IMG/VR virus record: IMGVR_UViG_3300032285_004054
Location: 124,001-188,000 of that record
DNA: 64,000 nt
Direction: 5' to 3' (one strand)
The notes beneath the pieces were generated by a model. It was not told the DNA's origin, searched no databases, and saw only the letters and a list, made by a program, of their open reading frames with translations. Made by a program: the position numbers and the translations under genes. This document shows, one piece after another, positions 32,541 through 55,780 of this stretch (its first letter is position 1; each line of letters opens with the position of its first letter).

Positions 32541-33470
32541 CTACTGCCCCATTGCTTTATTTGTGTATTTGTTCACGTTGAACAAAGCTTCGGGTAGTAG
32601 ATCGGCTCTAGAAGCTCTTGCAGGATTAATATCCAGTGAACCTCTACGGGAGTAAAGAAGAGTAACACAGCAATCAGTTACTTCAGGATGCTTCATAATA
32701 GTTGTAAATAGTTTCTCAGCACAAAACTCATGAAATTCATTAACTTCACGGAGAGATACAATCTGCTTAAAAAGAGACTCCGGATCAACTGCCATGCCGT
32801 CTTTTGTCTTAATAAGAATATATGCTGCACCTGTATCCTTCTGTTTAGTATGACGGCAACGTGAACGAAGAGCATTAGTAAACCAGCGACTTGTTACGGG
32901 CTGATTGTCTTCTGGATGCAACTTATAAAACTTAAGATGATCTACCTGAGAGGAATAGTCAGTTATTTCAATAGAATCTGCTTTACCGTAGAGTTCCCAA
33001 TAAAGATCGAGATATTCATCTTCGAACGCATTATACGAATTTACATCTGAACCTGACGGAAAGAAGCAAACATGTACAGGTGTCTGTAGAGCAGCTTCAA
33101 GATCTTTCTTAACTTGCTCTTCGTAGTTAACGATAGCTTCCTTAATAGAACTACCCATCTTACACATATCAAAAGAATTGAGATAGAGTTTAGCAGACTT
33201 TGACTCTACCATAAACTTTGACTCAGCAGGGTATGTATACTTTAACGTACCTGCTACAGGGTAGCCGTTATCGAGGAGAAATGTTGCTTCGTGGCAATGC
33301 CATGTATCAAAACCGACAAATTCATTGCCGGTAATACCGTGATCAGCTCTCGCTAATTCTCTTGGCATTGGATTAAGCAATGATGGATCAAATTGCTCGG
33401 TATAAATTGCGTACGAAGCTGAAGATCCAAGTGTCTTCGACGCAATATCAGTTAGGTTTGTTGTACTCAT
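32541..33470 (-). CDS. queF: NADPH-dependent preQ0 reductase, two-domain type
   Basis: QueF motif ESKSAKLYLNSF; catalytic C-x6-D (SRCRHTKQKD); EFHEFC; YSRRGSLDINP. Confidence 0.92.
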   Translation of the reverse strand: MSTTNLTDIASKTLGSSASYAIYTEQFDPSLLNPMPRELARADHGITGNEFVGFDTWHCHEATFLLDNGYPVAGTLKYTYPAESKFMVESKSAKLYLNSFDMCKMGSSIKEAIVNYEEQVKKDLEAALQTPVHVCFFPSGSDVNSYNAFEDEYLDLYWELYGKADSIEITDYSSQVDHLKFYKLHPEDNQPVTSRWFTNALRSRCRHTKQKDTGAAYILIKTKDGMAVDPESLFKQIVSLREVNEFHEFCAEKLFTTIMKHPEVTDCCVTLLYSRRGSLDINPARASRADLLPEALFNVNKYTNKAMGQ

Positions 33471-34027
33471 AATTCGTAAGGGTTGTTATATTCGTATTTT
33501 TGTGTTTCCCAGCGTTCAATAGAATTAAGCACTTGCATAACTCTATTTTCAACTGAACCTGAAATTCTAATAACAGGAACTTTATACGATTGTATAATAG
33601 CTTGAAACGATTGCACTACACATTCAAAGAAATCTCTATTAACAGTTCGTTGACCGTCTTCTACTAACGGCAATTCCGGTTCAACATAAAAAATAATATC
33701 ATATCTATCAATCATTGCATAAAACAATTCTCTAATAGCACTCAGCACTTTTAAGTCTTTAACCAAAGACATTGAGTATGCATAACCATCTAAAGCACAA
33801 CGATCGTAAATAATATTACCGTCTTCATTAAGACGCTGAAGATGTTTAGTCATAATAGCTAATTGAGTTACCTCATCACCATCCTCATTTATATTATAAC
33901 CTGCCTCCTGCATACCTCTTGTTAAAGAAGTTTTAAAAGAAAAATCATCTAATAAACCGCTATCTTGTAACGCATTTACAAGAGTAGTTTTACCTTGACT
34001 ATGAGCTCCTGAAATAGCTACCTTCAT
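33467..34027 (-). CDS. P-loop nucleotide kinase (AAA_28/dNMP-kinase-like)
   Basis: MKVAISGAHSQGKTTL, IYDRCALD, IIFYVEP; coupled to queF. Confidence 0.8.
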   Translation of the reverse strand: MKVAISGAHSQGKTTLVNALQDSGLLDDFSFKTSLTRGMQEAGYNINEDGDEVTQLAIMTKHLQRLNEDGNIIYDRCALDGYAYSMSLVKDLKVLSAIRELFYAMIDRYDIIFYVEPELPLVEDGQRTVNRDFFECVVQSFQAIIQSYKVPVIRISGSVENRVMQVLNSIERWETQKYEYNNPYEL

Positions 34028-34563
34028 GCTGAATATAATAACCTCTTATTCAAAAATGTAAACCATAAATTTGTAGCATCCTTATGAAGTTTTTCTAAAA
34101 CTTCAAACTCAAGTACCCCTTCTATAAGAATTGTACTATACTCTTCTATTTTACCGCCATCAAGTTCGGCAGTACAGCGATGAATTGTATTACCTGACCA
34201 TTTCTGAAGTTCTTGTACAGCTCTTTTTTGAGGGTCCTTGCCTTTAAGATGAGGATGAAGCAAGAGATTAGCAGGATGTAGATTATATATTTCATACTCT
34301 TCACATATTTCACCCGGTATAATCCTCAACCATCCGTGTAACGTAACGAATGCGTTTTTAGGTATATGATGTTTATACTCTTCTATAGAAGGCGATTTAC
34401 TAATTTGAAAAATTCTAGCTCCAAACTCGTTAATAAGTTTTTGATTAACGCCGTTTAAATCCTGTCTATTGGTTATAATAAGATCAGGTGTACGGTTAAG
34501 TTTCTTTGAAAGATTGTAAATCTCACTACCTGTTTGACTAAAAAAAGTTACCCAAGGTCTCAT
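34024..34563 (-). CDS. dpdN: PurN-like formyltransferase (DpdN-like)
   Basis: FFSQTGS start, TLHGWLRII, YNLHP, GKDPQ, GNTIH...ELDGGKI formyltransferase motifs; inside the deazaguanine operon. Confidence 0.8.
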   Translation of the reverse strand: MRPWVTFFSQTGSEIYNLSKKLNRTPDLIITNRQDLNGVNQKLINEFGARIFQISKSPSIEEYKHHIPKNAFVTLHGWLRIIPGEICEEYEIYNLHPANLLLHPHLKGKDPQKRAVQELQKWSGNTIHRCTAELDGGKIEEYSTILIEGVLEFEVLEKLHKDATNLWFTFLNKRLLYSA

Positions 34564-35414
34564 GATACGAACGTACAGAGCTTTTTAAATACGTGTGTGT
34601 TGTACAAAACATCAGTAATTTGTTCAGATGTTAATGTAGAGCTAATAAAATCAACAAGCTTTACTGACCATTTTTCATCTAATCCTCTAAGAAGACCGTA
34701 ACGCTTACCTAAGATAGCTGCAACAATTGGGTTCGATGTGTCAATTGTTTCAATACATTTAAGATTTTGAAATCCAAACTCCCAGGGTACACTACATCCT
34801 AGTAGATGATGAGGTTTATCATGATTAATAATGCCGTCTCTATACAACCTTTCAATAAGACATATACGACCTAAAGCATAATTTGACCATTTATTAAATT
34901 TAAAATCTTTTAAAACGTCAGGTATCATATCTCCCCAGTCAAGTTCCTTTTGAACGCTCGCAAGATCAGGCCATTCGTTAAGATAAAAACTATAATCGAA
35001 TGAAATAGCGATCTTATCTGCTATACTCGACATAAAACGATAACATTTTACAATCTCCTCATATGTCTTACCTTGAACAACACCTATTGTCTTACCTGGT
35101 AGTACAGAATATTTCTCAGTAAATTTTGCGTAGCTTTCGATTGTTTCTTCAGTATTTTCAAGTACATCTGGTACAATGTATTCAGTTGGTTTAAGACGAG
35201 ATACCCAATAAGCGAATTCGTCAGAATCATATGCTGTACCTAACTCAAAAATTGAGTTGTCAAGAAGAACATGTCTGCCTTCTTTAACTGAATCTTCAAA
35301 GAACTTATAATATTCAGGATGCTCTTTAAATAGATGTACAAGCGCATAATCATAATCATTATAAGATTTTGATACATCTAGGAAAGATATAGGTGTCTCG
35401 TGGCTAATTAACAT
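34560..35414 (-). CDS. dpdA: TGT-like 7-deazaguanine transglycosylase (DpdA3-like)
   Basis: TIM-barrel TGT-type motifs LLDNSIFELG, IVPDVL, IGVVQG, HHLLGC, IDTSNP; adjacent to formyltransferase and queF. Confidence 0.75.
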   Translation of the reverse strand: MLISHETPISFLDVSKSYNDYDYALVHLFKEHPEYYKFFEDSVKEGRHVLLDNSIFELGTAYDSDEFAYWVSRLKPTEYIVPDVLENTEETIESYAKFTEKYSVLPGKTIGVVQGKTYEEIVKCYRFMSSIADKIAISFDYSFYLNEWPDLASVQKELDWGDMIPDVLKDFKFNKWSNYALGRICLIERLYRDGIINHDKPHHLLGCSVPWEFGFQNLKCIETIDTSNPIVAAILGKRYGLLRGLDEKWSVKLVDFISSTLTSEQITDVLYNTHVFKKLCTFVS

Positions 35415-35432
35415 AAATATTGATCAATAATA

Positions 35433-35672
35433 ATGTCTAACGAAGAAGATATCCAGTATATAATTGTAAAAAAATTAGTCTACGTGATAAAAGTAGGGCC
35501 TATTTATTTTTGGGATACAGCTGCTACAAATAAAGCTGAATGTCTTAGAAAAGGTTTACAGTTTTTTAAAGTAGAAAGTGAACATCTTTTAAAAATTAAA
35601 GGTGCTGAATTAATACGTTTATTTACAAAAGAAATTATAGCTCAAGATAATAAATCAAATAAGTCTGTTTGA
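35433..35672 (+). CDS. Hypothetical protein (79 aa)
   Basis: Fills the gap between dpdA and polymerase on the opposite strand; 31-nt overlap with the polymerase 3' end. Confidence 0.4.
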   Translation: MSNEEDIQYIIVKKLVYVIKVGPIYFWDTAATNKAECLRKGLQFFKVESEHLLKIKGAELIRLFTKEIIAQDNKSNKSV

Positions 35673-38185
35673 ACCTCTTTACCTATTTGTGGTAGTCTCC
35701 AACCGATAGCTTCATAAACACTTTCAATAGGTGGTACTACAATCTTACTAAACATCTTATCGTAATCAATTTTAATTGAATTAAATTCCTCTGGATATTC
35801 ACTTGTAAATGCTATTGCATCTAACCCATACTTATTTTTAGAAGCGTAGAAGTATTTTATCTTTTGTCCTGATTTAATAGTCTCGTATTTGGTTTCGAGC
35901 TCTAACTCATTTAAAAGTAAATTATACGCAATAGATGCTTTTACGTGACAAGGAGTTGCTTTGTTAAATTTTGATAGAGATGCACCTTGTGAATACTTTT
36001 CGTATTCTTTTACAGATTTTCTAAAAGCAGCTTCTGCAACACTGAGTGTCTTAAACGTATCGTAAGCTTCTCTAAAAACTTCATTTGTCTTCTTAACATC
36101 TCTAGACAGGAAGGCTGTATTTACGGTTTTCTTAATTACCTCTTTTACTTTTTGAGGTGTTGTTGAGCGTGCAAGCTCAACACCTACATATTTAAATTTA
36201 CTAACAGGTACCCCTTCATCATCAAGAATATGTAAGATATATCGTTTCTTTTGTAAGAAAGCTCCTACGTCAGCAATGGCTTCTCTCTTGAATACAAATC
36301 TCGGATCTGCTGAATTTAATTCTTCTCTAGCCCAGTCAAGAATTTTTGTACCTAAATGCTTATCAATTGCGTTGATAATTGTATGAGATTGCTCAGTAAC
36401 AATATTATTGTCAGCAAGTTTGATATTAAGTTTATCAAGAATTGGCTGAATTGTAATGTATAACGAGTCAGTATCACCACTTAAGATTAATGAATTATCT
36501 GTTTTAAAAGTTTCTTTTGCAAATTCGTTAATAATATGTCCACCTGCTTTAGCTACAGCTTGACCTGTAAGTGTAATAGAGGATGCATTATCAATATCCA
36601 TGAAAGCAGAATGCTTATTTGCAAACGTACCATAGATAGAATTTAGAAGAATTTTTAACGTATACTGTAGGGTATCGAAGTATTGTATAGAGGATGTTGT
36701 TTCTTTATCTTGCTTCTTTGTTTTCTTAAGCTCAAGCATTCTCTTACGAGCATAAACTCGCTCATCATAAATACTATTAATCAAATTAGGACAAACACCT
36801 TTAAACTTTTGAGAATATAGTACACCAGCTTTTGAAAGTGATACGTTTTCTGCTTTTAAGAATTGCTTGAGTTTATCAACAGTGATAGTAAATGTACCAC
36901 CGTTGACAAGTTTAATTTGAACTTCTTTATCTACTTCAACATCTCCTGTTACTATTTTACCTAATTTAGTTTCAGGTGAAATGTTTAAAGTAATAATAGT
37001 GTTAGGGTATAGGGAGTTAACGTCAAAACTTACAATAGCTTCTTTGAGACCTCGTTCGGGATCTCTTACATAACCTCCTTCAAGAGCCTCTCTTTCAATT
37101 TCGTTTTTAAATGTAGGTATAATGTATCCTTGTTTTTGGGCTTGTAAAGTCATTGCACCTGTAACAATAGATACTTTACCGAGTGCGCGTTCAAAGTTTG
37201 TACATCCTTTGTATGCTAGTAGACGAATGATCTTAAGATAGTTAAGCTTATCTTCCATTTTACGTAGAAGATCGACGTCCTGAATATTGTAATCAACGAA
37301 GTTTTCCCAATCTGTTTCAGCTAATGTTGAAAGGTTTGTAGCGTTAATTGCAAGCTTACCTTCACCTAACTCGTATTCGGCAATATAATTCAACGAAAAC
37401 GACTCTCTATCTCCTTTAGAGTAAGTCTTATAAATTTCCATGTAGTCTAAACAGCTAATACCTGTAATGTACCAGCGACCTACATCTTTACCGAACTTAG
37501 CAAAATTAGAACGGTAATTAAGTTCTCTTACTGGTGATAATTGTTTAATAAACTCTTCACCTAAGAGGTTTTTTGCTCTATTAATAATATACGGCACGTC
37601 AAACTGCTCGGTATTCCATCCTGTTAGAATATCTGGTGGATCCTTTTTCCAAAAATTAACAAACCGTTCAAATAGTTCTTCCTCGTTACTACACTTATAA
37701 TATGTAACGTTATCTAGTTTAGGTGTATAGTCGTTCTTTAACCCCCAAGTGTGTATTTTACCTGTAATTGTATCAAGAATAGTAATGAGGGTAACAGGGT
37801 CTTTTGCTCGTTCGGGTATAGGAAATTCATTCGGTGAATACGTTTCAATATCGATAAAATAAACCTTAAGAGGAAACTTACTGAATTCCTCTTTATGTAC
37901 ATCCTCTTTGAAGGTTTCGATAAGAAACTGCTGATCTACAGGTAAATTACCAAAGAGTCTTGGGTTACCTGTATCTTGAACGAACTTATTACGTTCAAAA
38001 GAATTTCTAAATGAATGTCTTTTTAAAGGGGTTTTAAAAATAGAAACACCATCCTGAGCGCCTTCTTTTTCTGTATATAAGAACGGTATAAACGGTACTT
38101 CAGTATCTATACGCTGACCGTCTTCTGTCCAAGTTCTAAGATATACTAAACCGTCTTTAGGGTTATAAGATGCGTTTCTATACAC
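35642..38185 (-). CDS. gp43: Family B DNA polymerase
   Basis: Exonuclease DIET, WNTEQFD, YNIQDV; polymerase FDVNSLYP, KILLNSIYG, GDTDS, KKRY; GTG start. Confidence 0.97.
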   Translation of the reverse strand: MYRNASYNPKDGLVYLRTWTEDGQRIDTEVPFIPFLYTEKEGAQDGVSIFKTPLKRHSFRNSFERNKFVQDTGNPRLFGNLPVDQQFLIETFKEDVHKEEFSKFPLKVYFIDIETYSPNEFPIPERAKDPVTLITILDTITGKIHTWGLKNDYTPKLDNVTYYKCSNEEELFERFVNFWKKDPPDILTGWNTEQFDVPYIINRAKNLLGEEFIKQLSPVRELNYRSNFAKFGKDVGRWYITGISCLDYMEIYKTYSKGDRESFSLNYIAEYELGEGKLAINATNLSTLAETDWENFVDYNIQDVDLLRKMEDKLNYLKIIRLLAYKGCTNFERALGKVSIVTGAMTLQAQKQGYIIPTFKNEIEREALEGGYVRDPERGLKEAIVSFDVNSLYPNTIITLNISPETKLGKIVTGDVEVDKEVQIKLVNGGTFTITVDKLKQFLKAENVSLSKAGVLYSQKFKGVCPNLINSIYDERVYARKRMLELKKTKKQDKETTSSIQYFDTLQYTLKILLNSIYGTFANKHSAFMDIDNASSITLTGQAVAKAGGHIINEFAKETFKTDNSLILSGDTDSLYITIQPILDKLNIKLADNNIVTEQSHTIINAIDKHLGTKILDWAREELNSADPRFVFKREAIADVGAFLQKKRYILHILDDEGVPVSKFKYVGVELARSTTPQKVKEVIKKTVNTAFLSRDVKKTNEVFREAYDTFKTLSVAEAAFRKSVKEYEKYSQGASLSKFNKATPCHVKASIAYNLLLNELELETKYETIKSGQKIKYFYASKNKYGLDAIAFTSEYPEEFNSIKIDYDKMFSKIVVPPIESVYEAIGWRLPQIGKEVQTDLFDLLS

Positions 38186-38191
38186 ACGCTA

Positions 38192-38219
38192 ATAATAGAC
38201 CGGTTTTAATTTGTTTCAA
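38192..38219 (-). promoter_or_regulatory. Sigma70-like promoter of the DNA polymerase
   Basis: TTGAAA-16 nt-TATTAT-6 nt-GTG(38185). Confidence 0.68.
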
Positions 38220-39469
38220 GATAATTTTGGATTTGTCTCAAGAAGATATGTTCTTTCATTAGAACCAAACGGCGTAAAATATGCTTCGTGATGTTTTCCG
38301 AGATTCTTTTCATCTTCAAGCCAGTAGTTATCAGTAAACGCACGTGACTTCTTACAAAGATCAGCATAACGAGTTTGATCTTTAAGAGCATATTTAATTT
38401 GATCAATAAACTCATCACCTGTCTTATACTTTAAGAGAGCATCCTTATATGTTACCATATCTGGACAAACACAAGGTAGACCCATTGCTCCTGCTTCTAA
38501 TAATTTAATATTAGATTTAGCACGATTAAAATTATTATCTTGTAGGGCAGCGAATGTTAGCTGTGTACCTGACTCTGCCATAGAAGCCGGGAAGTCTGGT
38601 AACTGTACCCACTCCTTGTAAATAATTTCACCTGAATCAACAAACGGTTTTAACGGTAGGGGGTAGCAACCGTAAAACTGCCATTGATAATCCTTACGGG
38701 TCTTCATTACAGCATTAACTACATGTGCAAAATCGTCTGCTTGATTAACACGGTTAACTACGTCTACGTGTGTACCTGAAGCAAAAATTGAAATAACGGG
38801 TTTCTTTTTATTCTTTTCGTATCCTTTGATAAGCTTATCGAGGTTGTAATAGCGATCAAACCACCATTTCAATAGATAGTTCGGTATTACAGTCGTAGCT
38901 TTATTACCTGTTTTCTCAATAAAATAATCTCTCATGAAATCACATGTAACAGTAACCTCATCACACATGTTCATAATATCGAGAATAGATCCTCGAATCT
39001 CATCGCTCGTAAATGCATCTTTATTACGGTTGTAATCTGGAATATCTTCTCTAAAGACAATATCGTCGATTTCGTAAATAAGCTTAAAGCCGTTTTGCTT
39101 GGAAAGCTCTTTAAGAACTTTAACAAACTCTTTTTGAATTGGTGTTGCCTGGCGTTGAATTTTAACTGCCTGAATGCCCTGATAAAATCTAGGATCCAGA
39201 ACCATCGTTGTTAATTCTAACACAACAGCTTTATTATAGAGATTAAGCATGGAGTTAGGAGCCATACAACGATAAAAACTACAGCCACCGTAATCAGCTA
39301 AATAATTTACAGCTCTTGGTAGATTTGCCCCAGGTATTTCAGGTGGAGGTAATTCAAAAGAACCTCTTGTAGGTACAGCACAAAATGTTGAAGGCATACC
39401 TAAAGGTAGGCCAACAGGTGCACCTATTGTTGTGTCTAAGCTAGTTCGTACGAGATTATAGTTGCTCAT
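38216..39469 (-). CDS. GT-B fold glycosyltransferase
   Basis: GGCSFYRC, IYEIDD, DEVTVTCDF, VIPNY, NNFNRAKSNIKLLEAGAMGLPCVC acceptor/donor motifs. Confidence 0.8.
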   Translation of the reverse strand: MSNYNLVRTSLDTTIGAPVGLPLGMPSTFCAVPTRGSFELPPPEIPGANLPRAVNYLADYGGCSFYRCMAPNSMLNLYNKAVVLELTTMVLDPRFYQGIQAVKIQRQATPIQKEFVKVLKELSKQNGFKLIYEIDDIVFREDIPDYNRNKDAFTSDEIRGSILDIMNMCDEVTVTCDFMRDYFIEKTGNKATTVIPNYLLKWWFDRYYNLDKLIKGYEKNKKKPVISIFASGTHVDVVNRVNQADDFAHVVNAVMKTRKDYQWQFYGCYPLPLKPFVDSGEIIYKEWVQLPDFPASMAESGTQLTFAALQDNNFNRAKSNIKLLEAGAMGLPCVCPDMVTYKDALLKYKTGDEFIDQIKYALKDQTRYADLCKKSRAFTDNYWLEDEKNLGKHHEAYFTPFGSNERTYLLETNPKLS

Positions 39470-41267
39470 TGTTGTTTAATATATATGTAAAACCGTTTCT
39501 TTTTTCAAGCTGAATAATACTATCAACTTTACTGTTAATAGCGTTACTACGATGTGTTATAATATAACATCCTTCATTATATTTTTCAAGACGTTCACGT
39601 AATACTTTCATTACTAATTCAACACCTTTGTCGTCTAAAGAGGAATCGAGTAGTTCATCATAAAAAATAGTACTAAAATTAATATCGCCCTGTAAGCGTC
39701 TAATGTCTAGAAAAGCAAATAAACAGGCGAGGTCAATTCTTTTACGTTCACCACCAGAGAAGTTAAAATAAGATTTAACTTCGTTATTTTCATCGATAAT
39801 TTGCTCATCAAAAAACTCGTTAAACTGACATAAGCAATTTGCATGTAGTGCATTTAAGTAGTGAGCTAATCTAGCATTCAATAGCTTTAATATTTTTTTT
39901 ACAATATAAGCTTTAACTCCTTCCTCTGAAACAACAAATTTAACACTATCCAATACGTTTAAATTTAAATCTAACGCATCTATTTGTTGGATGTAGTTAT
40001 TTTGCTCTATTGTTAAATTTTTAACGTTTTCTTCTAAAGAAGTGTTAGTTTCTTGTTTAACAGATTCGATATCTCTTAGAATCTCGTTATTACTTTCTTC
40101 AATAATATTAAGCTTATTTGTACAGATAATATTTTTATTTTTAAGATCTTTAATCTTATCTTTTTTATCTTGTAGTTCTCTAAATTGCTGTTTAATATAC
40201 TTAATGTTTTCTTTAACATTATCGTATTGCTCTTGCCACTTGCTTACGTTTTTAGTGTACTGTACTTCTTTTTCTTTTAACTTATTAATAGCATCAGTTC
40301 TATGTGTCGTATCTTCTTCAGAGTATGGTCGTTGACACAGCTTACACGATGAACCTACCTTTTCAATCTCTTTAATATTGTTAATATTTGTTTCTAATTC
40401 GAACTTAGCAGTAGTTAACTGCTGTAATGTATTTGTATGCTCAGTATCTGCTGCAACTTGAAGCTCGTTTAGTTCTGTTTCTTTATTTGAAATAAGCTCT
40501 TCAATATTTACTGGTACATCAATTATACTATTTTTAAGTAGGGTATAATTGCTGTTATTGTTTTCAATTTTAACCTCAAGATCTTTTATTTTGTTTTGTT
40601 TATTAACATTGAACTGATTAAGTTGTACTAGATTAAATTCAAGAGTTTTATCAATTGTTGTTTTTTTAGCAAAAACTACATCATACTCTCTCTTCAACTC
40701 ATTGTATTGCTCTCTAGCTTTTAAAAGCATCTCTGAAAACACTTCTAGATTAAGCGTGCTTTCGATAAATTTTCGTTTATCAACTTTAGACTGTGCCATA
40801 AAAGGTACAGTATTATTAATCGTCATTACAACAGTATTTTGAAATATTTTGCTAGTAGAGTTTACTAACTGTTGTATATACTCGTTTGTTTTAGGTAAAG
40901 TTGAACGCGTGACATCAACACCATCTTTTAAGATGGAACATTTTGTAGGTCCTAAGGACCGTGTTACGGTATAATTGTTTGTTATACCGTTTACGCTTAT
41001 TTGTAATTCGAGTTTAACTTCGCAATGTTTTTTATTATAAGAGTTAACAATAAGATCTTTACTTAGTTCTCTAATCGTTGAACCGAATAACGCAAAATGC
41101 AATGCATCGACGACTGTCGATTTACCTACACCGTTTTTAGAATCTTCCTTATCGTAGTTAATGCCTGTAATGACATTAATACCTGATTGAAAGTTAATAA
41201 CTATCGGTTCACTACCTACCGATAGAAAATTACGAACTGTAAGTGTTTTAAAGCTTATTACCCGCAC
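39456..41267 (-). CDS. gp46: Recombination endonuclease ATPase subunit (Rad50/SbcC-like)
   Basis: NFLSVG, NGVGKST, central CKLC hook, FSGGERKRID, FYDELLD, IITH. Confidence 0.95.
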   Translation of the reverse strand: MRVISFKTLTVRNFLSVGSEPIVINFQSGINVITGINYDKEDSKNGVGKSTVVDALHFALFGSTIRELSKDLIVNSYNKKHCEVKLELQISVNGITNNYTVTRSLGPTKCSILKDGVDVTRSTLPKTNEYIQQLVNSTSKIFQNTVVMTINNTVPFMAQSKVDKRKFIESTLNLEVFSEMLLKAREQYNELKREYDVVFAKKTTIDKTLEFNLVQLNQFNVNKQNKIKDLEVKIENNNSNYTLLKNSIIDVPVNIEELISNKETELNELQVAADTEHTNTLQQLTTAKFELETNINNIKEIEKVGSSCKLCQRPYSEEDTTHRTDAINKLKEKEVQYTKNVSKWQEQYDNVKENIKYIKQQFRELQDKKDKIKDLKNKNIICTNKLNIIEESNNEILRDIESVKQETNTSLEENVKNLTIEQNNYIQQIDALDLNLNVLDSVKFVVSEEGVKAYIVKKILKLLNARLAHYLNALHANCLCQFNEFFDEQIIDENNEVKSYFNFSGGERKRIDLACLFAFLDIRRLQGDINFSTIFYDELLDSSLDDKGVELVMKVLRERLEKYNEGCYIITHRSNAINSKVDSIIQLEKRNGFTYILNNNEQL

Positions 41268-41301: not shown

Positions 41302-41303
41302 CT

Positions 41304-41912
41304 TTATTTTTTTACAATGTATGATGTAATACTTTGTCCGTTGTTTGTTGAATATACTTCACAAAATTCTATTTGGTTTTTTAAATTCAAAATTTGTTCT
41401 TCGGTTACATAAAAATTTTTATAATCTGAACAGTTAATGTTTTTAATATCTTTTAAAAGGCTTAAAGTTGTGCTTTCTGTTTTAGTTTCTAATAGACTTG
41501 TGTGTAAATCTTCTAATATGTAAATTCCTCCGCTTTTAAGTCTGTTAAAAATATTAACTATTGATACTTGCTGCTGAAGCATCGTATGACCTCCATCATC
41601 TATTATAAGGTCAAATTCTACTCCGTTAAAAACACTCTGTAAAAAATTAATATCTGTTTGATCGCCCTGTTCAATTACAATACGATCCTCTTGTAGGTAT
41701 TTTCGATCTTCTATATCGAAACCGTATATTGTTGCTTTTGGAAAGTATTCTTTCCACATACGTAACGATTGGCCTAAGAAAACACCTATTTCTAAAATAG
41801 AAGTGTAAGTATTTCTAAAATTTGAAAGTTTTTCATTATATATTTGTGTAAAGTGATGGTTTACAGCTTTATCTGTACTACATTTTAGTCCTATTTCAGT
41901 TAATATGTCCAT
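41304..41912 (-). CDS. Class I SAM-dependent methyltransferase, sugar O-methyltransferase-like
   Basis: TDKAVNHHFTQIY, ILEIG, YGFDI, GDQTD, DLIIDDGGH, GGIYILEDL, as in the MycE/OleY-type family. Confidence 0.82.
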   Translation of the reverse strand: MDILTEIGLKCSTDKAVNHHFTQIYNEKLSNFRNTYTSILEIGVFLGQSLRMWKEYFPKATIYGFDIEDRKYLQEDRIVIEQGDQTDINFLQSVFNGVEFDLIIDDGGHTMLQQQVSIVNIFNRLKSGGIYILEDLHTSLLETKTESTTLSLLKDIKNINCSDYKNFYVTEEQILNLKNQIEFCEVYSTNNGQSITSYIVKK

Positions 41913-41915
41913 AAA

Positions 41916-42623
41916 TTATACTATTTTTGTAAATCCTTCGGTGTTCCATTTTCTATAAAATACTTCTTGAGCATCAAGAAGTTTCTTTCTTACCTGATCT
42001 GATGTCTCTTCAGATTCGGGTTTATTTAGCCCGTGTTCAATTTGGGATGCTGTATTTAAAGCATGCGGTAATTTGTTTGCCTGTAGACAGCGTTCATAAT
42101 CGTTATCTTGAAAATAAAAATCAAAACGCTCATCAAATTTACCAATAATATCAAAAACCTGTTTACGCATAAACAAACAAAAACCTAATAAAAATTTTGT
42201 TGTTTCATAACCAAAATATAAAGTATTATCTTCTGGGAAATCATTATATGTATTTCTATGCCAGGAACGATCTACCGGGCTTGCAGACATGAGAGTGTTA
42301 ATTTTATTAAACGCAAATACCATGTTCTCAAGGCATTTTGGTTTTGTTATAACATCGTTATTTGAAATACAAATAAACTCTGATGTACAGTATGTCAAAG
42401 CTATATTAAGAAATTTGTTGTAATTGAAATCGTAAGGCGGTACAACACTAATAATTTTATTAGAAATATTTTTCCAAATAGAGTTATCAAAGTCTTTATT
42501 ACTCTCAACCAGAATAATATTATTAATATACTGTTCTTCTTTAAGGTAAGACGTAATACATCTTAATACCATTTCATAATACTCACTATTTTTTGTATAT
42601 GTAAGTATAATAATATCGATCAT
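41916..42623 (-). CDS. GT-A (family 2) glycosyltransferase
   Basis: IDIIILTY, ILVES, FNYNKFLN, CISNNDV, IGKFDERFDFYFQDND. Confidence 0.82.
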   Translation of the reverse strand: MIDIIILTYTKNSEYYEMVLRCITSYLKEEQYINNIILVESNKDFDNSIWKNISNKIISVVPPYDFNYNKFLNIALTYCTSEFICISNNDVITKPKCLENMVFAFNKINTLMSASPVDRSWHRNTYNDFPEDNTLYFGYETTKFLLGFCLFMRKQVFDIIGKFDERFDFYFQDNDYERCLQANKLPHALNTASQIEHGLNKPESEETSDQVRKKLLDAQEVFYRKWNTEGFTKIV

Positions 42624-48331: not shown

Positions 48332-48598
48332 ATGTCTTTGTTTGACAACATTGTTAATTCTATTTTAAAAGAAAGTGCTAATATATCTGGTGGTATTGGT
48401 AGTGCGTTTGGTCCGGGTGTAGGAGCGGAGGGAGCAACACAATTTTCAGCTGATACCTACGCAAGAGGAGATGCACGTATAGTTAAACCTTTAAGTAAAG
48501 GTGTAATCACTCGTAATGGAGTCGTAAAAACTGTATTTTCAACAGGTAAAAAAAGTAAAAAGAAACATTCCAGGCGCCGTAAACATAAAAGAAAGTAA
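48332..48598 (+). CDS. Small late protein, possible internal head protein
   Basis: MSLFDNIVNSILKES start, basic tail; TAAATA 6 nt before the ATG. Confidence 0.65.
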   Translation: MSLFDNIVNSILKESANISGGIGSAFGPGVGAEGATQFSADTYARGDARIVKPLSKGVITRNGVVKTVFSTGKKSKKKHSRRRKHKRK

Positions 48599-49014
48599 TG
48601 GAATACGGACATTGGATTGTAAGAGAAGGTGTTAGTATATCTGAGGGTACTTTTGGGTTTATATATGAAATTACCAATACTGTTTTAAATAAAAAGTATA
48701 TAGGTAAGAAGCAGTGTACAAGTCGTATTAAACGTAAACCTCTTAAGGGTAAAACACGTAATAGAATAGAACATAAGGAATCTGATTGGAAGTTATACAC
48801 AAGCTCCTCAAATGAACTAAATGAAGATATAGCAAAGTACGGAAAAGATAAGTTTTGTTTTGAAATTATAAAAGAATGTAATTCGAAGTGGGAATTAGCA
48901 TATTATGAAATTAAAGAGCAACTCGATAAACAGGTTCTTTTAAGGGAAGACTACTATAACGGTATAATAAATGTAAGAATAGGTAGACCTCCTAAAAGTG
49001 CTAAGATTAAATAA
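48598..49014 (+). CDS. GIY-YIG family endonuclease
   Basis: GFIYEITN...KYIGKK, WKLYTSS, FEIIKEC, YYE, YYNG. Confidence 0.8.
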   Translation: MEYGHWIVREGVSISEGTFGFIYEITNTVLNKKYIGKKQCTSRIKRKPLKGKTRNRIEHKESDWKLYTSSSNELNEDIAKYGKDKFCFEIIKECNSKWELAYYEIKEQLDKQVLLREDYYNGIINVRIGRPPKSAKIK

Positions 49015-49604: not shown

Positions 49605-49624
49605 ATTTACATTATAATATGGGT

Positions 49625-50122: not shown

Positions 50123-50188
50123 GTGAATTAAAGACCCTTTAAGCCCCCTGAACAATTGTTTTTATGGAACTTTCAATAAATATATTAT

Positions 50189-50898: not shown

Positions 50899-50908
50899 TA
50901 GATAACAT

Positions 50909-51871
50909 ATGCTTTCTGAATCTTTTTTAAGTTTTTATAAAAACGGTTCGTATATTACCGAGGGAGGTAATGTATTCGGTACTACTCATCCTATTAAGAA
51001 AGAATATATTGATTCTACTTTAAAAGAATTTTATAAACAACTTATCGGTATTTTTCCTGAGGCTGATATTCATTTTAAAAGTATTCGTACTTTAGGTTCT
51101 GTTGGCAAGAAGCCTGAATCTGGAGATATTGATCTTGCTTTATCAGAAGATTCATTTAAAAATATTGATGATTGGGGTCTGAATAGATCTGAAGTAAAAC
51201 ATCTTTTTGATTCTTTTAAAAAGAAATCTAGAACCGCAACTGATGAACTTCTTCTAAAGAGAGCAGTTATTGTAGCAATTGCTGAAAAAATAAACGAAAG
51301 CGAATGTGATATAGTTACTGATATTAAGGGTTCCTCTGCAGGATCTCTTTTTTGTCAATTTCCACAATTTGATGATCAAGGTAACAAACTAGAAACATTT
51401 GTTCAAATTGATATTAATGTAGGAAATCTAGATTGGTTATCCTTTGCTTATCATTCTGCTACATATTCTGGTAATGTTAAAGGTTTACATCGTACCCAGC
51501 TTCTTGTTTCCCTCTTTTCACATAAAGGTTATACATTTTCACACAATTACGGTGTAAAAGATAGAGAAACTCAAGAAATTGCAGCCTCTACTCCTCAAGA
51601 AGCCATCGAACTTTTAAATAAACTATACAATATTGAGTTAACTCCTGATATTGCTGGAGATTACTTCAAATTAATGAATTATCTAAAGTATGAACTCTCA
51701 CCTGAAGATCTTCATGCTGTATACGACACTTACTTACGAATTTTAGATAGTACAAGAGCTGATATACCTGAAGATTTACAGGAATATTGGAAAGAACATC
51801 AACAACGCTTAGGTCTTAAGGGTAAATTCTTACCTAATGAATCAAACCTAGCAAAATATAAAACAACATAA
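50909..51871 (+). CDS. Pol-beta superfamily nucleotidyltransferase-like protein
   Basis: LGSVGKKPESGDIDL (GS...DxD) plus third Asp in VQIDINV. Confidence 0.7.
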   Translation: MLSESFLSFYKNGSYITEGGNVFGTTHPIKKEYIDSTLKEFYKQLIGIFPEADIHFKSIRTLGSVGKKPESGDIDLALSEDSFKNIDDWGLNRSEVKHLFDSFKKKSRTATDELLLKRAVIVAIAEKINESECDIVTDIKGSSAGSLFCQFPQFDDQGNKLETFVQIDINVGNLDWLSFAYHSATYSGNVKGLHRTQLLVSLFSHKGYTFSHNYGVKDRETQEIAASTPQEAIELLNKLYNIELTPDIAGDYFKLMNYLKYELSPEDLHAVYDTYLRILDSTRADIPEDLQEYWKEHQQRLGLKGKFLPNESNLAKYKTT

Positions 51872-51872
51872 T

Positions 51873-53288
51873 ATGTCTGGAGTAGCAGGAGGTAATAGAA
51901 TCAAAAGACAAGACGTATCTGATACGTTCAATGACTATGTTAGAAGGGTTTTGACAAGAATTCCTTCTTTTGTTAATGCTTCCTTATCAGGTAGTGTAAA
52001 AGTAGGTGCAAAAGATGATTACGGTGATCTAGACCTTATTGTTTTGTTTAAAGGTAAGGATAAAAAAGTGGTAAAACAGCAAATTATTGATGTTGTTCAA
52101 TCTTTACCAGATGCCGTTATTGTACCTTTCAAAAATCCTCGCTATCAGGGTAGAAAATACTATAATGCTGGGGAATTAATATCCGTATTATTCCCTATTA
52201 CAGGCCGTCCCGGAGAATTTATACAGGTTGATAATAATGTAGCTTTATCAGTTGAAGAGCACACATTTAAAAACAATTTTTTAGATTTACCTGCTGAAAT
52301 TCAAGGACTTCTTATCGGTCTTACAAAAGTAGTAACACTCGAAGAAAAGCCTTCTGAGATTTTTAAAAAATTAGGTATTACAAATTTACCAAAATTAGCT
52401 AGTAATCAAGAATTTGAGTTTAATTTAAGCTCGGTCAATCTTTCTCTTAGAAAAGTTACTCTAGATGGATACAAAGAGTTATCCAGGGAAGTAGTTTGGA
52501 GTTCATCTGATTGGGAAAAAGTAAAATTACTTCTTAGTAAGTTCAATATCAATCTACCTTTTGAAGAGTTACTGAATAGTATTGCCAGACGCTTAACAAA
52601 TCCAAGATCCAAAGCAAGAATTGCAGGAATCTTTAAGAGTATGGTGAGTGTTAAGTCAGGGGAGGTAGGTACCGCTAAGGGAGCAGGTAAAGAAAAAGCA
52701 CTTCTTGCTGTAGCTCAAAAGCTTGCTGAATCTGTTGAAGAAAGTCAACAGGTTGTATCAATTTATGCCGGGGGGTTTAAACCACCTCATAAAGCACATT
52801 TTAGAAACGCACAAATTCTTGCAAACAAATCAAACAAATTAATAATTTTCATTGGACCGAAAATACGGGAAGGGTTAACAATAACACCTGAGCAATCTAA
52901 ATCTATTTGGGAGGTATACACCAAGTATATTGATGTACCTACCGAGGTAAGTATTAGTAGTATCACACCAATTAGAGATACATACGAATGGATTGACTTA
53001 AATCAGTCAACTGTCAAACAGATCATTACCGGTACAACAAAAGAAGAGATGGGTAAGTTCTCAAGTATAGCTAAAAACGCTGAAAAATACCCTAAAGTTA
53101 CCGTAGTTGAGTTACCGGTAATAACATACGGTGAAGATGAAAAATTCTCTGCAGGAGATATTAGAAAATCAGAAGATTATATCAAATCCGGTAGCTGGAT
53201 ACCTGCTGAGCTTAGTGAAGAGGATAAGAAAAAAGTTATTAATATAGCTCTACCGAAACAAGCGTTTAGAGAATATTTTAAGAAATAA
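51873..53288 (+). CDS. Fusion of Pol-beta-like nucleotidyltransferase and HIGH-family (cytidylyltransferase-like) domain
   Basis: N-terminal LSGSVKVGAKDDYGDLDL + IQVDN; C-terminal YAGGFKPPHKAH and FSAGDIRK. Confidence 0.75.
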   Translation: MSGVAGGNRIKRQDVSDTFNDYVRRVLTRIPSFVNASLSGSVKVGAKDDYGDLDLIVLFKGKDKKVVKQQIIDVVQSLPDAVIVPFKNPRYQGRKYYNAGELISVLFPITGRPGEFIQVDNNVALSVEEHTFKNNFLDLPAEIQGLLIGLTKVVTLEEKPSEIFKKLGITNLPKLASNQEFEFNLSSVNLSLRKVTLDGYKELSREVVWSSSDWEKVKLLLSKFNINLPFEELLNSIARRLTNPRSKARIAGIFKSMVSVKSGEVGTAKGAGKEKALLAVAQKLAESVEESQQVVSIYAGGFKPPHKAHFRNAQILANKSNKLIIFIGPKIREGLTITPEQSKSIWEVYTKYIDVPTEVSISSITPIRDTYEWIDLNQSTVKQIITGTTKEEMGKFSSIAKNAEKYPKVTVVELPVITYGEDEKFSAGDIRKSEDYIKSGSWIPAELSEEDKKKVINIALPKQAFREYFKK

Positions 53289-53294
53289 CTATAG

Positions 53295-53322
53295 TTGATA
53301 AAGAAATACGAGGTTATATAAT
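53295..53322 (+). promoter_or_regulatory. Sigma70-like promoter of the queD-queE operon
   Basis: TTGATA-16 nt-TATAAT-8 nt-ATG(53331). Confidence 0.68.
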
Positions 53323-53330
53323 AACCCGTA

Positions 53331-53612: not shown

Positions 53613-53613
53613 T

Positions 53614-54132
53614 ATGTCTCAATACACATCTACTAAATTAATCGAGCTAGGCTCTTGTGCTTTTCGTCAATGGCGTGCTACCCACAGTCATTGCCAATAT
53701 ATTCACGGATATCGCTTAATGGCTAAGTTTTGGTTTGGTTGTGATTCTCTTGATGAGAAGAACTGGGCAGTTGACTTTGGAGGTCTTAAGGAGCTTAAGA
53801 AGATTCTTAACAATCAGTTTGACCACACCCTTTGTGTTGCTCAGGATGACCCTCTCCTAGAGGAGTTTAAGAAGCTAGATGATATTGGAGGTGTTCAACT
53901 CCGTATTATGGAATCAGTCGGTGTTGAAAAAACAGCCGAATGGTGCTTTAAAACAGCTAATGAGTTTGTAAAAAACCTAACACAGAATCGTTGCTGGGTA
54001 GAGAGTGTTGAAGTGTTCGAACACGAACAGAATTCTGCTATCTATTCTAAAGAAGATTTAACACTTAAAATAACACCTTCAGTAACTTCAACATCAAATA
54101 CATTTTATGCCTCAGACCGACCAGGAGTCTAA
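53614..54132 (+). CDS. queD: 6-carboxytetrahydropterin synthase
   Basis: HSHCQYIHGY, WAVDFGGLK, FDH, GVEK, VEVFE. Confidence 0.92.
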   Translation: MSQYTSTKLIELGSCAFRQWRATHSHCQYIHGYRLMAKFWFGCDSLDEKNWAVDFGGLKELKKILNNQFDHTLCVAQDDPLLEEFKKLDDIGGVQLRIMESVGVEKTAEWCFKTANEFVKNLTQNRCWVESVEVFEHEQNSAIYSKEDLTLKITPSVTSTSNTFYASDRPGV

Positions 54133-54322
54133 ACCTCTACTACTTAAACCTTACGCACCTGTAACAGGGGATGTATTTACAGAAGGTGAGTTCGGGTTTA
54201 CTAAACTCGTAGCTTTACTTAGTGTACTTGTATATGCACTCATTTATAATATTATTTGTACACCTTTAGGGTGGATTGGTATTGTAATATCTGCAATTGG
54301 GTATAAACTGATATCAAAATAA
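54107..54322 (+). CDS. Small membrane protein
   Basis: Two hydrophobic stretches; fills the queD-queE gap exactly. Confidence 0.55.
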   Translation: MPQTDQESKPLLLKPYAPVTGDVFTEGEFGFTKLVALLSVLVYALIYNIICTPLGWIGIVISAIGYKLISK

Positions 54323-54323
54323 T

Positions 54324-55154
54324 ATGGAAAATAATACATTAGAAATTTCAGAGCACTTCTACTCCGTACAATGTGAAGGTATCTCCACAGGTGTACCGGC
54401 GTATTTTATTCGTTTGAAAGGTTGTAATCTATCCTGTGGTTTTTCAGGTAAAGCTATTGTAGATCTTAAGCGTAATCTTGAAGAAGTTGAAGGTTATGTA
54501 GTAGGTGGTAATATAACTGGTGATTTACACAGTGAAGGTAAGGCAACATGGACATGTGATTCAGCACCTGTCTGGCTCAGAGGTGCTCATACTACATACG
54601 AGCAGCTAGTACAATCTTGGGTTGATCAAGGTATCCTAGATTGGATTCTAGATGGTACAATTCATCTTATCTGGACAGGAGGTGAACCTACAATACCTAA
54701 GCATCAAAAAGCAATTGTCGGTTTCTTGAAGTGGTTTGCTGACAAATATAAAACAGAAAAAGTTTATAGTGAGATTGAAACTAACGGTTCAATTGTTATT
54801 GAAGATAGTCTTCTTACTTGGCTAGATCAGATTAATTGCTCGGTTAAGCTTCATAATTCAGGCATGGATAAAGATAAGCGTATTAATGAACAGGCACTTC
54901 GCCGTATTAAGCTTCATCGCAATTATTCATTTAAGTTTGTAATCTCTGACGAGGAAGATTTAGTAGAAATTATTAGAGATTTTGTAGTACCTTTTGAAAT
55001 ACCTACTAACAGAATCTGTATGATGCCCGGACTAGATAGTCAAGAACATTACCATGAAAGGACACGTTTTGTTTTAGAGATGGCTAAGAAGTATGGTTTT
55101 AGAGGTTTATCACGTTTACATATTAGTGCTTGGGATCAAGCAACAGGTGTATGA
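54324..55154 (+). CDS. queE: 7-carboxy-7-deazaguanine synthase (radical SAM)
   Basis: EHFYSVQCEG..TGVPAYFIRLKGCNLSC...CDS, WTGGEP, IETNG, SVKL, FKFVI, RLHI. Confidence 0.92.
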   Translation: MENNTLEISEHFYSVQCEGISTGVPAYFIRLKGCNLSCGFSGKAIVDLKRNLEEVEGYVVGGNITGDLHSEGKATWTCDSAPVWLRGAHTTYEQLVQSWVDQGILDWILDGTIHLIWTGGEPTIPKHQKAIVGFLKWFADKYKTEKVYSEIETNGSIVIEDSLLTWLDQINCSVKLHNSGMDKDKRINEQALRRIKLHRNYSFKFVISDEEDLVEIIRDFVVPFEIPTNRICMMPGLDSQEHYHERTRFVLEMAKKYGFRGLSRLHISAWDQATGV

Positions 55155-55780
55155 AAATTGCTATAATAGGTACACATTGTAACGGTAAGACAACTCTTAT
55201 TGAGGAATTTCTAAAGCGCTGGCCAATGTATAAGAAGCCAGCGAAGACGTATAGAGATTTCTTAAATGATAAGAAAATAAAAATTAATCAAAAAGGCACT
55301 AAAGAGAGCCAGAGAGCGATACTTGATGCACTTATTGATGAAGTACAAACGGCTTGCGGATCAGGAGATGAGTTTCTTATCTTTGATCGTTGTGTATTAG
55401 ACAATCTTGTTTATTCACTTTGGCTTAATGCAAAAGGTAAAGTTGATGATAACTTTATTATGGATTGTAAGTTTCTAGTATCTGAAACAATTAAGCTTTT
55501 TGATATTATCTTTTACATACCTTTAAGAGAAGAAATTAAATTAGAGAAGAGAAAACATAGAGATATTGACCCTGTTTATCGAGAGGAAATTGATAATATA
55601 TTCTCAGCGGTTATTGGTACATATCTTACTGGGTCAGGTATTTTCTTTCCGTTAAGTGATTGCCCGGCTGTTATTGAAATTGAAGGTCCGCCGGATCTAA
55701 GATGCGATCAAATACAGCTCTATATTAAAGATACAGGAAAAACGTATACAGAGGAAGATCCATCGTTAATTTATACATAA
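55151..55780 (+). CDS. P-loop nucleotide kinase (AAA_28/dNMP-kinase-like)
   Basis: MKIAIIGTHCNGKTTL, FDRCVLD, IIFYIP; ATGA overlap with the queE stop (start moved from 55130). Confidence 0.8.
   Translation: MKIAIIGTHCNGKTTLIEEFLKRWPMYKKPAKTYRDFLNDKKIKINQKGTKESQRAILDALIDEVQTACGSGDEFLIFDRCVLDNLVYSLWLNAKGKVDDNFIMDCKFLVSETIKLFDIIFYIPLREEIKLEKRKHRDIDPVYREEIDNIFSAVIGTYLTGSGIFFPLSDCPAVIEIEGPPDLRCDQIQLYIKDTGKTYTEEDPSLIYT

Follow-up and report, generated by a model that had tools for sequence, protein, structure and literature searches.

A P-loop kinase associated with the DpdA3-type transglycosylase homolog in a large T4-like phage

We found that one of two paralogous small kinases encoded by a large T4-like phage accompanies DpdA3, the enzyme linked to complete replacement of guanine by a 7-deazaguanine, in every locus that could be assessed among the best 80 found by each of our searches of IMG/VR. 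The other kinase appears to be a general one for this phage lineage. The association suggests, but does not prove, that the modified base is built as a free nucleotide before replication. We found no paper that mentions the DpdA3-linked kinase.

The analyzed window is a stretch of 64,000 nucleotides from the IMG/VR record IMGVR_UViG_3300032285_004054 (positions 124,001 to 188,000). An earlier note, based on the sequence alone, had pointed to two paralogous nucleotide kinases in it, and this observation proved to be correct. The first, K1 (33467-34027, 186 aa), lies on the minus strand, which the note did not say; on the plus strand the same interval is full of stops. The second, K2 (55151-55780, 209 aa), lies on the plus strand. 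An automatic ORF list starts K2 at a TTG at 55130, but the ATG at 55151 is the start that aligns with homologs. A BLASTP comparison of K1 with K2 gave 29% identity over 159 residues (E 8e-14). Both proteins contain a P-loop (GxxxxGKTT), a DRCxLD motif and an FY(V/I) motif.

K1 is part of a four-gene cassette on the minus strand in the order dpdA3-dpdN-K1-queF, with 4-nt overlaps between the genes. The first gene (34560-35414) encodes a DpdA3-type guanine transglycosylase homolog of 284 aa and lies directly downstream of a T4 gp43-type family B DNA polymerase gene (35642-38185, minus strand). It is followed by a gene for a DpdN-type formyltransferase (34024-34563, 179 aa; Pfam Formyl_trans_N, 39.6 bits; 41% identity with DpdN of the Flavobacterium phage immuto). 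The ATG of K1 overlaps the dpdN stop codon (34024-34027), and its own stop codon overlaps the ATG of queF (33467-33470). The last gene (32541-33470) encodes a bimodular QueF of 309 aa (Pfam QueF_N 82.5 bits, QueF 41.1 bits; TIGR03138 E 2.7e-51, below the equivalog cut-off). No terminator-like site was found inside the cassette.

K2 lies at the end of a string of plus-strand genes that is preceded by a strong promoter-like site (11/12, 53295-53322). The string begins with queD (53614-54132, 172 aa), which encodes a member of the 6-carboxytetrahydropterin synthase family (Pfam PTPS, 61.1 bits) that is 42–45% identical to the QueD proteins of immuto and phiST. A small hydrophobic ORF (54107-54322, 71 aa) separates it from queE; a small ORF holds the same position in immuto, but the two sequences are not similar (E 0.57). 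The queE gene (54324-55154, 276 aa) encodes a protein of the radical-SAM 7-carboxy-7-deazaguanine synthase family. Several NCBIfam QueE models hit it, all below their cut-offs (best E 1.8e-16), and it is 25–27% identical to QueE of immuto and CP220. Its stop codon overlaps the ATG of K2 by 4 nt (55151-55154). Further away, we noticed a possibly related GMP reductase gene (62309-63250, minus strand, 313 aa; NCBIfam NF003966, 370 bits against a cut-off of 344). A GMP reductase is also found upstream of the dpdA3-kinase pair in some IMG/VR loci (L035-L043 in our numbering of loci), but it occurs as well in G004, a related genome that lacks DpdA3, so it is not specific to the pathway.

Both kinases pass the gathering score of 27 bits of the Pfam P-loop kinase family AAA_28 (PF13521), K1 with 58.6 and K2 with 46.3 bits, and both hit PHROG 2107. 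The AlphaFold2 model of K1 (pLDDT 88.8) matches, with a Foldseek probability of 1.00, the NadR RNK domain (TMq 0.72), thymidylate kinases and the dAK/dCK deoxynucleoside kinases. The family keeps invariant residues G7, G12, K13, T15, D75, R76, R127 (the predicted lid arginine) and R162, as well as Q55 and Y84 in the acceptor region, as would be expected of an active small-molecule kinase. Databases label the family thymidylate kinase (PHROG 2107 and GenBank annotations) or nicotinamide riboside kinase (JGI), but these names rest on similarity only. Neither protein reaches the curated cut-off for dTMP kinase (TIGR00041, 83.25 bits; K1 22.1 bits, K2 no hit) or those for NadR (201 and 341 bits; K1 22 bits, K2 no hit), nor the gathering cut-off of 27 bits for the deoxynucleoside kinase family PF01712 (K2 16.8 bits, K1 no hit).

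The DpdA3 homolog gave no Pfam or NCBIfam hit. However, it is 43–46% identical, over at least 90% of the length, to Campylobacter phage CP220 gp056 and immuto gp206, the family that was named DpdA3 (PMC10516641), and the best Foldseek matches of its model (pLDDT 89) are tRNA-guanine transglycosylases (TMq 0.60–0.64). Invariant residues D52 (LDNS), D83 and D225 (DTS) occur in the order expected from Asp95 and Asp256 of DpdA, whose roles are described in PMC10164549, although this comparison rests on order alone, without a residue-level structural alignment, and the profile has no sequence hit in PDB.

We next examined how constantly the kinase and DpdA3 occur together. Among the 80 best kinase loci in IMG/VR, 73 have DpdA3 directly upstream, and the other 7 are cut by the contig end. 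In the reverse search, 73 of the 80 best DpdA3 loci have a kinase within 2 kb, 3 have one about 7 kb away and 4 are cut, so that all 76 assessable loci carry one. These counts are not phylogenetically independent, and only the best 80 loci of each search were examined. The adjacency of gp43 and dpdA3 is seen in 48 of the 80 kinase loci, whereas in relatives without the cassette gp43 is followed directly by the p122 homolog and UvsX. The pair recurs in unrelated phages, namely immuto (which has a family A polymerase), CP220 and Campylobacter CC_R7 (queC, DpdA3, kinase, DNA polymerase). Since dpdA3-kinase pairs exist without dpdN or queF (L025-L043), DpdA3 rather than either of these is the constant partner. 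In an unbiased clustering of neighbors, only the kinase, DpdA3, QueF and DpdN were shared across lineages. By contrast, tblastn searches with the family gave no hits in Escherichia, Vibrio, Salmonella, Pseudomonas, Streptococcus or halovirus records, where the phages reported with partial, DpdA1/2/4-type replacement lie.

At the genome level, all 8 DpdA3-positive relatives carry at least two kinases of this family, while 5 of the 6 DpdA3-negative relatives carry only K2, the exception being a 38%-complete fragment (Fisher p 0.003, uncorrected). K2 itself belongs to a distinct clade of 32 representatives (SH-aLRT 99), and K1 falls in the non-K2 part of the family tree. Orthologs of K2 at 46–48% identity are present in two complete related genomes, G002 and G004, which lack DpdA3, QueC, QueE and QueF. 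Only its closest relatives (13 loci at 54% identity or more, plus L143 at 46%) follow queE.

The interpretation given in the earlier note is therefore only partly supported. The note had tied each kinase to a different half of the deazaguanine pathway and, reasoning that post-replicative DpdA systems need no kinase, had inferred a route in which the transglycosylase acts on a free nucleotide and dedicated kinases build the modified dNTP. K1 is indeed an integral and conserved member of the DpdA3 module across very different phages, but the proposed assignment to pathway halves is not supported. The note had also named in advance findings that would refute it, among them homologs that are equally common in related phages lacking que and dpd genes, and this refuting condition holds for K2 but not for K1. 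The pre-replicative mechanism itself stays an inference, although the comparative data make it more plausible than the literature assumes.

We consider it most likely that K1 is a small-molecule nucleoside or nucleotide kinase that belongs to the DpdA3 module. In this view, DpdA3 would exchange guanine for the 7-deazaguanine base made by QueC/D/E/F (later formylated by DpdN) on a free deoxyguanosine nucleotide or nucleoside, not on DNA, and K1 would then phosphorylate the product towards the diphosphate. A general NDP kinase and the phage polymerase would complete the route, and the replacement would be complete because it happens before replication. K2 would be the ordinary kinase of this T4-like lineage, probably a broad dNMP kinase, which may or may not also handle the modified nucleotide. 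Our analysis establishes the paralogy, the family and predicted fold, the operon structure, the linkage of K1 with DpdA3 and the independence of K2 from the pathway; the kinase activity and substrates of K1, the substrate of DpdA3 and the timing relative to replication are inferred. We would put the functional linkage of K1 and DpdA3 alone near 0.9, but the whole statement including the mechanism at only about 0.45.

Several lines of evidence fit this reading. The three phages with measured complete replacement have nucleotide-pool enzymes beside DpdA3: immuto gp208 is a PRA-PH/MazG-like pyrophosphohydrolase, phiST has a MazG and a P-loop AAA_18 protein directly upstream of DpdA3, and CP220 gp055 combines an HD domain with an AAA_33 kinase domain. 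In addition, the authors of PMC10516641 report that their attempts to test DpdA3 in an E. coli model were unsuccessful, and they cite earlier work that found the nucleoside form of ADG in the cytoplasm of CP220-infected cells. However, all characterized TGT-superfamily enzymes act on polynucleotides, and the same paper states that insertion is post-replicative. The genome of the window has no detectable HD, MazG, MazG-like, PRA-PH or dUTPase_2 domain that could remove dGTP, and no such enzyme is conserved next to the cassette across lineages. In the related genomes G001 and G003, the second kinase is far from DpdA3. Moreover, phiST has no member of this kinase family, its neighboring P-loop protein is only a borderline AAA_18 match (29.8 against 29.4 bits), and the kinase domain of CP220 gp055 is of the polynucleotide-kinase type, which could equally point to DNA-end chemistry.

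The alternative that survives best, although we regard it as unlikely, is that K1 is an ATP-hydrolyzing accessory factor that lets DpdA3 work on DNA after replication, as a functional counterpart of DpdB. Bacterial DpdA is inactive without DpdB and ATP hydrolysis (PMC10164549), the published model for DpdA3 is post-replicative, and the tight adjacency and translational coupling of the cassette genes fit a protein partner as well as a metabolic one. A missing partner would also explain the unsuccessful tests in E. coli. On the other hand, K1 has a predicted small-molecule kinase fold with conserved acceptor-site and lid residues, not the ParB-like NTPase fold with a DGQQR motif of DpdB, and in G001, G003, G006, G007 and G008 the kinase lies 7 kb or much further from dpdA3. 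The apparent use of a non-homologous P-loop protein in phiST argues for a shared activity rather than a specific interface. A prediction of the complex of DpdA3 and K1 gave no support, but this is not evidence either way.

It is less likely still that K1 is a guanylate-type kinase that recycles the guanine released by base exchange, via a phosphoribosyltransferase to GMP and then to GDP and GTP, which feed the preQ0 pathway; the timing of base exchange would then not matter. One GTP is consumed per modified base (PMC10516641), and a phosphoribosyltransferase lies near the cluster in immuto and in 11 of the 80 kinase loci. However, the phosphoribosyltransferase and FolE are absent from most loci, FolE type I is absent from the genome of the window, and the kinase tracks DpdA3, not FolE or QueD/E. 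Host guanylate kinase would normally do this step, and the GMP reductase of the phage drains GMP.

We also doubt that K1 phosphorylates something on DNA, either a modified base, as the 5-hydroxymethyluracil DNA kinases do, or DNA ends produced during base exchange. P-loop kinases that act on modified bases in phage DNA occur in the thymidine hypermodification pathways (a related paper is PMC8989533), and CP220 gp055 next to DpdA3 has a polynucleotide-kinase-like domain. However, preQ0, preQ1 and formyl-preQ1 offer no hydroxyl group to activate, the kinase accompanies DpdA3 whatever the final base, and the nearest folds to K1 are nucleoside and nucleotide kinases, not polynucleotide kinases. 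Finally, the idea that both are ordinary housekeeping kinases (dTMP/dNMP or nicotinamide riboside kinases) placed incidentally next to que and dpd genes is probably right for K2, and distant members in Streptomyces, Mycobacterium and Achromobacter phages do sit among replication genes without que genes, but for K1 it is very unlikely in view of the essentially complete linkage with DpdA3 in both search directions and across unrelated phages, the extra kinase that appears only in DpdA3-positive genomes, and the unmet curated cut-offs.

How some phages replace every guanine with a 7-deazaguanine is unresolved. The literature moved from a proposed modified-dGTP route (cited in PMC6884629) to a post-replicative one once DpdA3 was found (PMC10516641). 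A kinase that accompanies DpdA3 is a concrete candidate for the missing component. The boldest possibility, which we hold only tentatively, is that DpdA3 is not a DNA transglycosylase but a base-exchange enzyme acting on free deoxyguanosine nucleotides or nucleosides, with the K1-clade kinase as the dedicated next step. Complete replacement in these phages, including CP220 and immuto, would then be pre-replicative, contrary to the current published model; a TGT-family enzyme would have a new substrate class; and the dpdA3-kinase pair would be the minimal, portable module for the process and a compact tool for making fully deazaguanine-substituted DNA. If K1 is instead a DpdB-like partner, it is still the factor needed to reconstitute DpdA3. 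In both cases, the thymidylate kinase and nicotinamide riboside kinase labels on hundreds of phage genes are probably misleading for the K1 clade.

Among known proteins, thymidylate kinase (TMPK) and the ribosylnicotinamide kinase domain of NadR share the P-loop, the DR motif, the lid arginine and the overall predicted fold with K1, and the family profile hits Aquifex TMPK at E 3e-8. However, K1 is a stand-alone protein without a fused NMNAT or HTH domain, and its genomic partner is a TGT-like enzyme, not NAD or thymidylate genes. The Gln of the TMPK 'AYQ' stretch after the DR motif, which reads thymine, is not kept in the single alignment to Aquifex TMPK that we inspected. The proposed logic resembles that of T4, where the gp1 dNMP kinase works with the gp42 dCMP hydroxymethylase and the gp56 dCTPase, so that a phage-encoded kinase rephosphorylates a base-modified dNMP and the polymerase incorporates it everywhere; it would also parallel the Z-genome phages (MazZ, PurZ). 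The genes described here sit among T4-type replication genes (gp43, UvsX, gp41), but the base-modifying enzyme is a transglycosylase homolog rather than a thymidylate-synthase homolog, and no dGTP-clearing enzyme was found in this genome. With respect to gp1, the Pfam scan returned only AAA_28 for K1 and weaker sub-threshold hits for K2. The bacterial Dpd system (PMC10164549) likewise pairs a TGT-family transglycosylase for 7-deazaguanines with a separately encoded ATP-using protein. However, DpdB is a ParB-like ATPase acting with DNA and the modification is sparse, whereas K1 has a predicted nucleotide-kinase fold and DpdA3 phages show complete replacement. A close counterpart is found in immuto, whose DNA carries formyl-dPreQ1 in place of all dG (PMC10516641, a paper in which the word kinase does not occur). 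Its genes are arranged in the same order, dpdA3-(small ORF)-dpdN-kinase-queF, and the proteins are 34–46% identical, but the phage backbone differs, with a family A polymerase in immuto and a T4-type gp43 here, and immuto has one kinase where the phage of the window has two.

The window (bases 124001-188000) belongs to a 218.4-kb IMG/VR virus record rated 100% complete. It derives from a T4-like phage and carries gp41 helicase, UvsX, gp43 polymerase and the gp46/gp47 nuclease pair on the minus strand. It has no near-identical relative in the isolate phage collection, in which a near-identical DNA search with the cassette described below gave no match. Both open reading frames that the earlier note had singled out as paralogous nucleotide kinases are real, and its observation is confirmed. 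The first, here called K1 (33467-34027, 186 aa), lies on the minus strand, while the second, K2 (55151-55780, 209 aa), is on the plus strand. They are 29% identical over 159 residues (E 8e-14), both pass the Pfam AAA_28 cut-off and both hit PHROG 2107. On the minus strand the gene order is dpdA3 (34560-35414), dpdN (34024-34563), K1 and queF (32541-33470), with a 4-nt overlap at each junction and no terminator-like site inside the cassette. On the plus strand, queD (53614-54132) is followed by a 71-aa hydrophobic ORF, queE (54324-55154) and K2, whose ATG overlaps the queE stop. A strong promoter-like site precedes this string.

The surroundings of these genes showed some further features. The small ORF between queD and queE (54107-54322, plus strand) has a counterpart of about 70 aa at the same position in Flavobacterium phage immuto (3885-4094 of its locus L003), but the two are not similar in sequence (E 0.57); the queE of Campylobacter phage CP220 is likewise followed by a small membrane protein. 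Two adjacent proteins of 320 and 471 aa (50909-51871 and 51873-53288, both on the plus strand) precede queD-queE-K2 in the window and in 4 of its closest relatives. They have no Pfam or PHROG hit, but by eye both display a Pol-beta-type nucleotidyltransferase motif (G-S...D-x-D) near the N-terminus, and the longer one has a weak NMNAT-like hit in its C-terminal half (E 0.002). A SegE-type GIY-YIG homing endonuclease gene (48598-49014, plus strand, Pfam 104.6 bits) is located at the switch between the minus-strand and plus-strand gene blocks. An island of a methyltransferase-like gene and several family 2 glycosyltransferase-like genes (41304-44787, minus strand) separates the gp47-like (44780-45835) and gp46-like (39456-41267) nuclease subunit genes, and a further glycosyltransferase-like gene (38216-39469, minus strand) sits between gp46 and gp43; the targets of these enzymes may be DNA, the capsid or the host surface. 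Elsewhere in the genome we found QueC (30259-30948 of the whole record) and a second QueD-like gene (209089-209445), so that the phage encodes QueC, QueD, QueE and QueF, but no type I GTP cyclohydrolase (FolE) was detected. The first step of preQ0 synthesis would thus have to come from the host or from an unrecognised enzyme. The window also encodes a GMP reductase (62309-63250, minus strand) that passes the NCBIfam equivalog cut-off (370 against 344 bits). A homolog lies upstream of dpdA3 and the kinase in the IMG/VR loci L035-L043, but another is present in the related genome G004, which lacks DpdA3. It could drain guanine nucleotides, but it is not specific to the pathway.

We next examined the proteins in further detail. 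A profile of the kinase family hit thymidylate kinase (E 3e-8), deoxynucleoside kinases and the NadR RNK domain among solved structures. The AlphaFold model of K1 (pLDDT 88.8) matched the NadR RNK domain best (TMq 0.72), followed by TMPKs and dAK/dCK. The invariant residues are the P-loop (G7, G12, K13, T15), R37, Q55, D75-R76 (the DR motif), D80, Y84, the lid R127 and R162. These are the hallmarks of an active small-molecule kinase, although activity is inferred here from sequence and predicted fold alone. Neither protein reaches the curated cut-offs for dTMP kinase or NadR, and the database names "thymidylate kinase" and "nicotinamide riboside kinase" rest on similarity only. The 284-aa product of the first cassette gene is 43-46% identical to the proteins named DpdA3 in CP220 and immuto. 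Its model has a TGT fold, but a profile of DpdA3 gave no hit among PDB sequences.

The K1-clade kinase is a constant companion of DpdA3, which is the new result of this analysis. IMG/VR holds 438 contigs that encode a relative of the kinase. In the best 80 of these, DpdA3 lies directly upstream in 73, and in the other 7 the kinase is less than 1 kb from the contig end. In the reverse search, more than 596 contigs encode DpdA3; of the best 80, 73 have the kinase within 2 kb, 4 are cut just after dpdA3 and 3 have the kinase about 7 kb away, next to dpdN and queF. These counts cover only the best 80 loci of each search and are not corrected for shared ancestry. The common layout is dpdA3-dpdN-K-queF, but we also found dpdA3-K-queF and bare dpdA3-K pairs with neither dpdN nor queF. 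DpdA3 is therefore the constant partner, not the preQ1-tailoring genes. The pair recurs on unrelated backbones: in immuto, which has a family A polymerase, in CP220 (gp055, DpdA3 gp056 and kinase gp057) and in the divergent Campylobacter phage CC_R7 (queC, DpdA3, kinase and DNA polymerase). An unbiased clustering of all ORFs around 153 such loci found only K, DpdA3, QueF and DpdN shared across lineages. In three unrelated backbones the module sits right next to the DNA polymerase gene. In the window (35414-35642) and in 48 of 80 IMG/VR loci gp43 is directly upstream, in CC_R7 the polymerase directly follows the kinase (4885-9349 of its locus L268), and in immuto a family A polymerase lies two genes after queF (7515-13657 of L003). 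Members of the kinase family were not found in phiST, Bacillus phage BSTP12 and Chryseobacterium phage MA9V-3, which carry distant DpdA3-like genes.

K2, in contrast, does not go with the pathway. Of 59 IMG/VR loci with a K2 relative, only 14 follow queE, namely the 13 closest (54% identity or more) and one further locus (L143) at 46%. In the family tree, K2 and its relatives form a clade of 32 representatives (SH-aLRT 99), while K1, the immuto kinase, both CP220 copies, the CC_R7 kinase and the second kinases of the relatives G001 and G003 all lie outside it. The idea that the two CP220 kinases mirror the K1/K2 pair could be rejected on these grounds. The genomes G002 (direct terminal repeats, 100% complete) and G004 (99% complete) are related T4-like genomes with gp43 47-49% identical. 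Each has a K2 ortholog but no DpdA3, DpdN, QueC, QueE or QueF, and in both gp43 is followed directly by the p122 homolog and UvsX, which is the site where the window carries the cassette. Among K2-bearing relatives, DpdA3-positive records have at least two kinases of this family in 8 of 8 cases, whereas DpdA3-negative records have one in 5 of 6, the exception being a 38%-complete fragment. In one of the DpdA3-positive relatives (G015), the second, non-K2 kinase (contig C1, 99553-100077) has one in-frame TGA, which could be a sequencing error, a pseudogene or recoding. In G001 and G003 the extra kinase is not beside DpdA3 but after the major capsid gene, next to a dUTPase-like gene and the clamp loader. 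In these two relatives dpdA3 is followed, instead of by dpdN-K-queF, by a gene with the ThyX-type motif RHRSFSFQEFSQRY, read by eye (10062-10712 of locus L259 in G001 and 10845-11657 of locus L258 in G003). More distant family members in Streptomyces, Mycobacterium and Achromobacter phages sit among replication genes with no que genes. The earlier note had named as a refuting condition that homologs be equally common in related phages lacking que and dpd genes; this condition is fulfilled for K2 but not for K1. K2 is thus a lineage-wide kinase that happens to abut queE in close relatives. The interpretation of the note, in which each kinase belongs to one half of the deazaguanine pathway and both point to a pre-replicative route, is therefore supported only in part.

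Several roles are conceivable for K1. A serious rival to a nucleotide-level function is that of an accessory ATPase, since bacterial DpdA needs an ATPase partner to work on DNA (PMC10164549). However, the predicted fold of K1 and its variable distance from dpdA3 argue against this, while a prediction of the DpdA3-K1 complex scored 0.00, which is no evidence either way. A guanine-recycling role and a DNA-level kinase role are less likely. A function in NAD salvage, prompted by the AAA_28/NadR match and by the weak NMNAT-like hit in the 471-aa neighbour of K2, is rejected for K1 on synteny and seems unlikely, though possible, for K2.

According to PMC10516641, the DpdA3 phages CP220, phiST and immuto replace all guanines, whereas DpdA1, DpdA2, DpdA4 and bacterial DpdA modify 0.1-30% or less. 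The authors conclude that insertion is post-replicative, and they report that their attempts to test DpdA3 in E. coli were unsuccessful. An earlier proposal of a modified dGTP for Campylobacter phages is cited in PMC6884629. The word "kinase" does not occur in PMC10516641, and our literature searches for a kinase linked to DpdA or to deazaguanine DNA returned nothing relevant. The kinase family gave no hits in the genera that hold the partial-replacement phages. In the three phages with measured complete replacement, DpdA3 has nucleotide-pool enzymes as neighbours: a PRA-PH/MazG-like pyrophosphohydrolase in immuto (gp208, 6796-7320 of L003), a MazG plus a borderline P-loop AAA_18 protein directly upstream in phiST (CGPG_00066, 5499-5978 of locus L007), and an HD plus AAA_33 (polynucleotide-kinase-like) protein directly upstream in CP220 (gp055, 6050-7081 of locus L004). 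CGPG_00066 is not a homolog of the K family (hhalign probability 1%) and has only non-significant PDB hits, to a polynucleotide-kinase domain. PMC10516641 listed it as of unknown function and the MazG as a dNTP hydrolase, and did not follow them up.

The window's genome itself has no detectable HD, MazG, MazG-like, PRA-PH or dUTPase_2 domain, and tblastn found no homologs in it of immuto gp208, the immuto phosphoribosyltransferase, phiST MazG or CP220 gp055. The way in which dGTP would be excluded is unexplained in this phage. While the paralogy, the operon structure, the companionship of K1 with DpdA3 and the independence of K2 are established by our analysis, the kinase activity of K1, its substrate and the timing of base exchange are inferred. 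We rank a nucleotide-level, pre-replicative route, with K1 as the rephosphorylating kinase, as the most likely mechanism; it is plausible and readily testable, but not shown. The arrangement in the three phages with measured complete replacement resembles the T4 hydroxymethyl-dC route and the Z-genome route, in which the normal dNTP is cleared or converted, the modification takes place at the monophosphate level and the product is then rephosphorylated.
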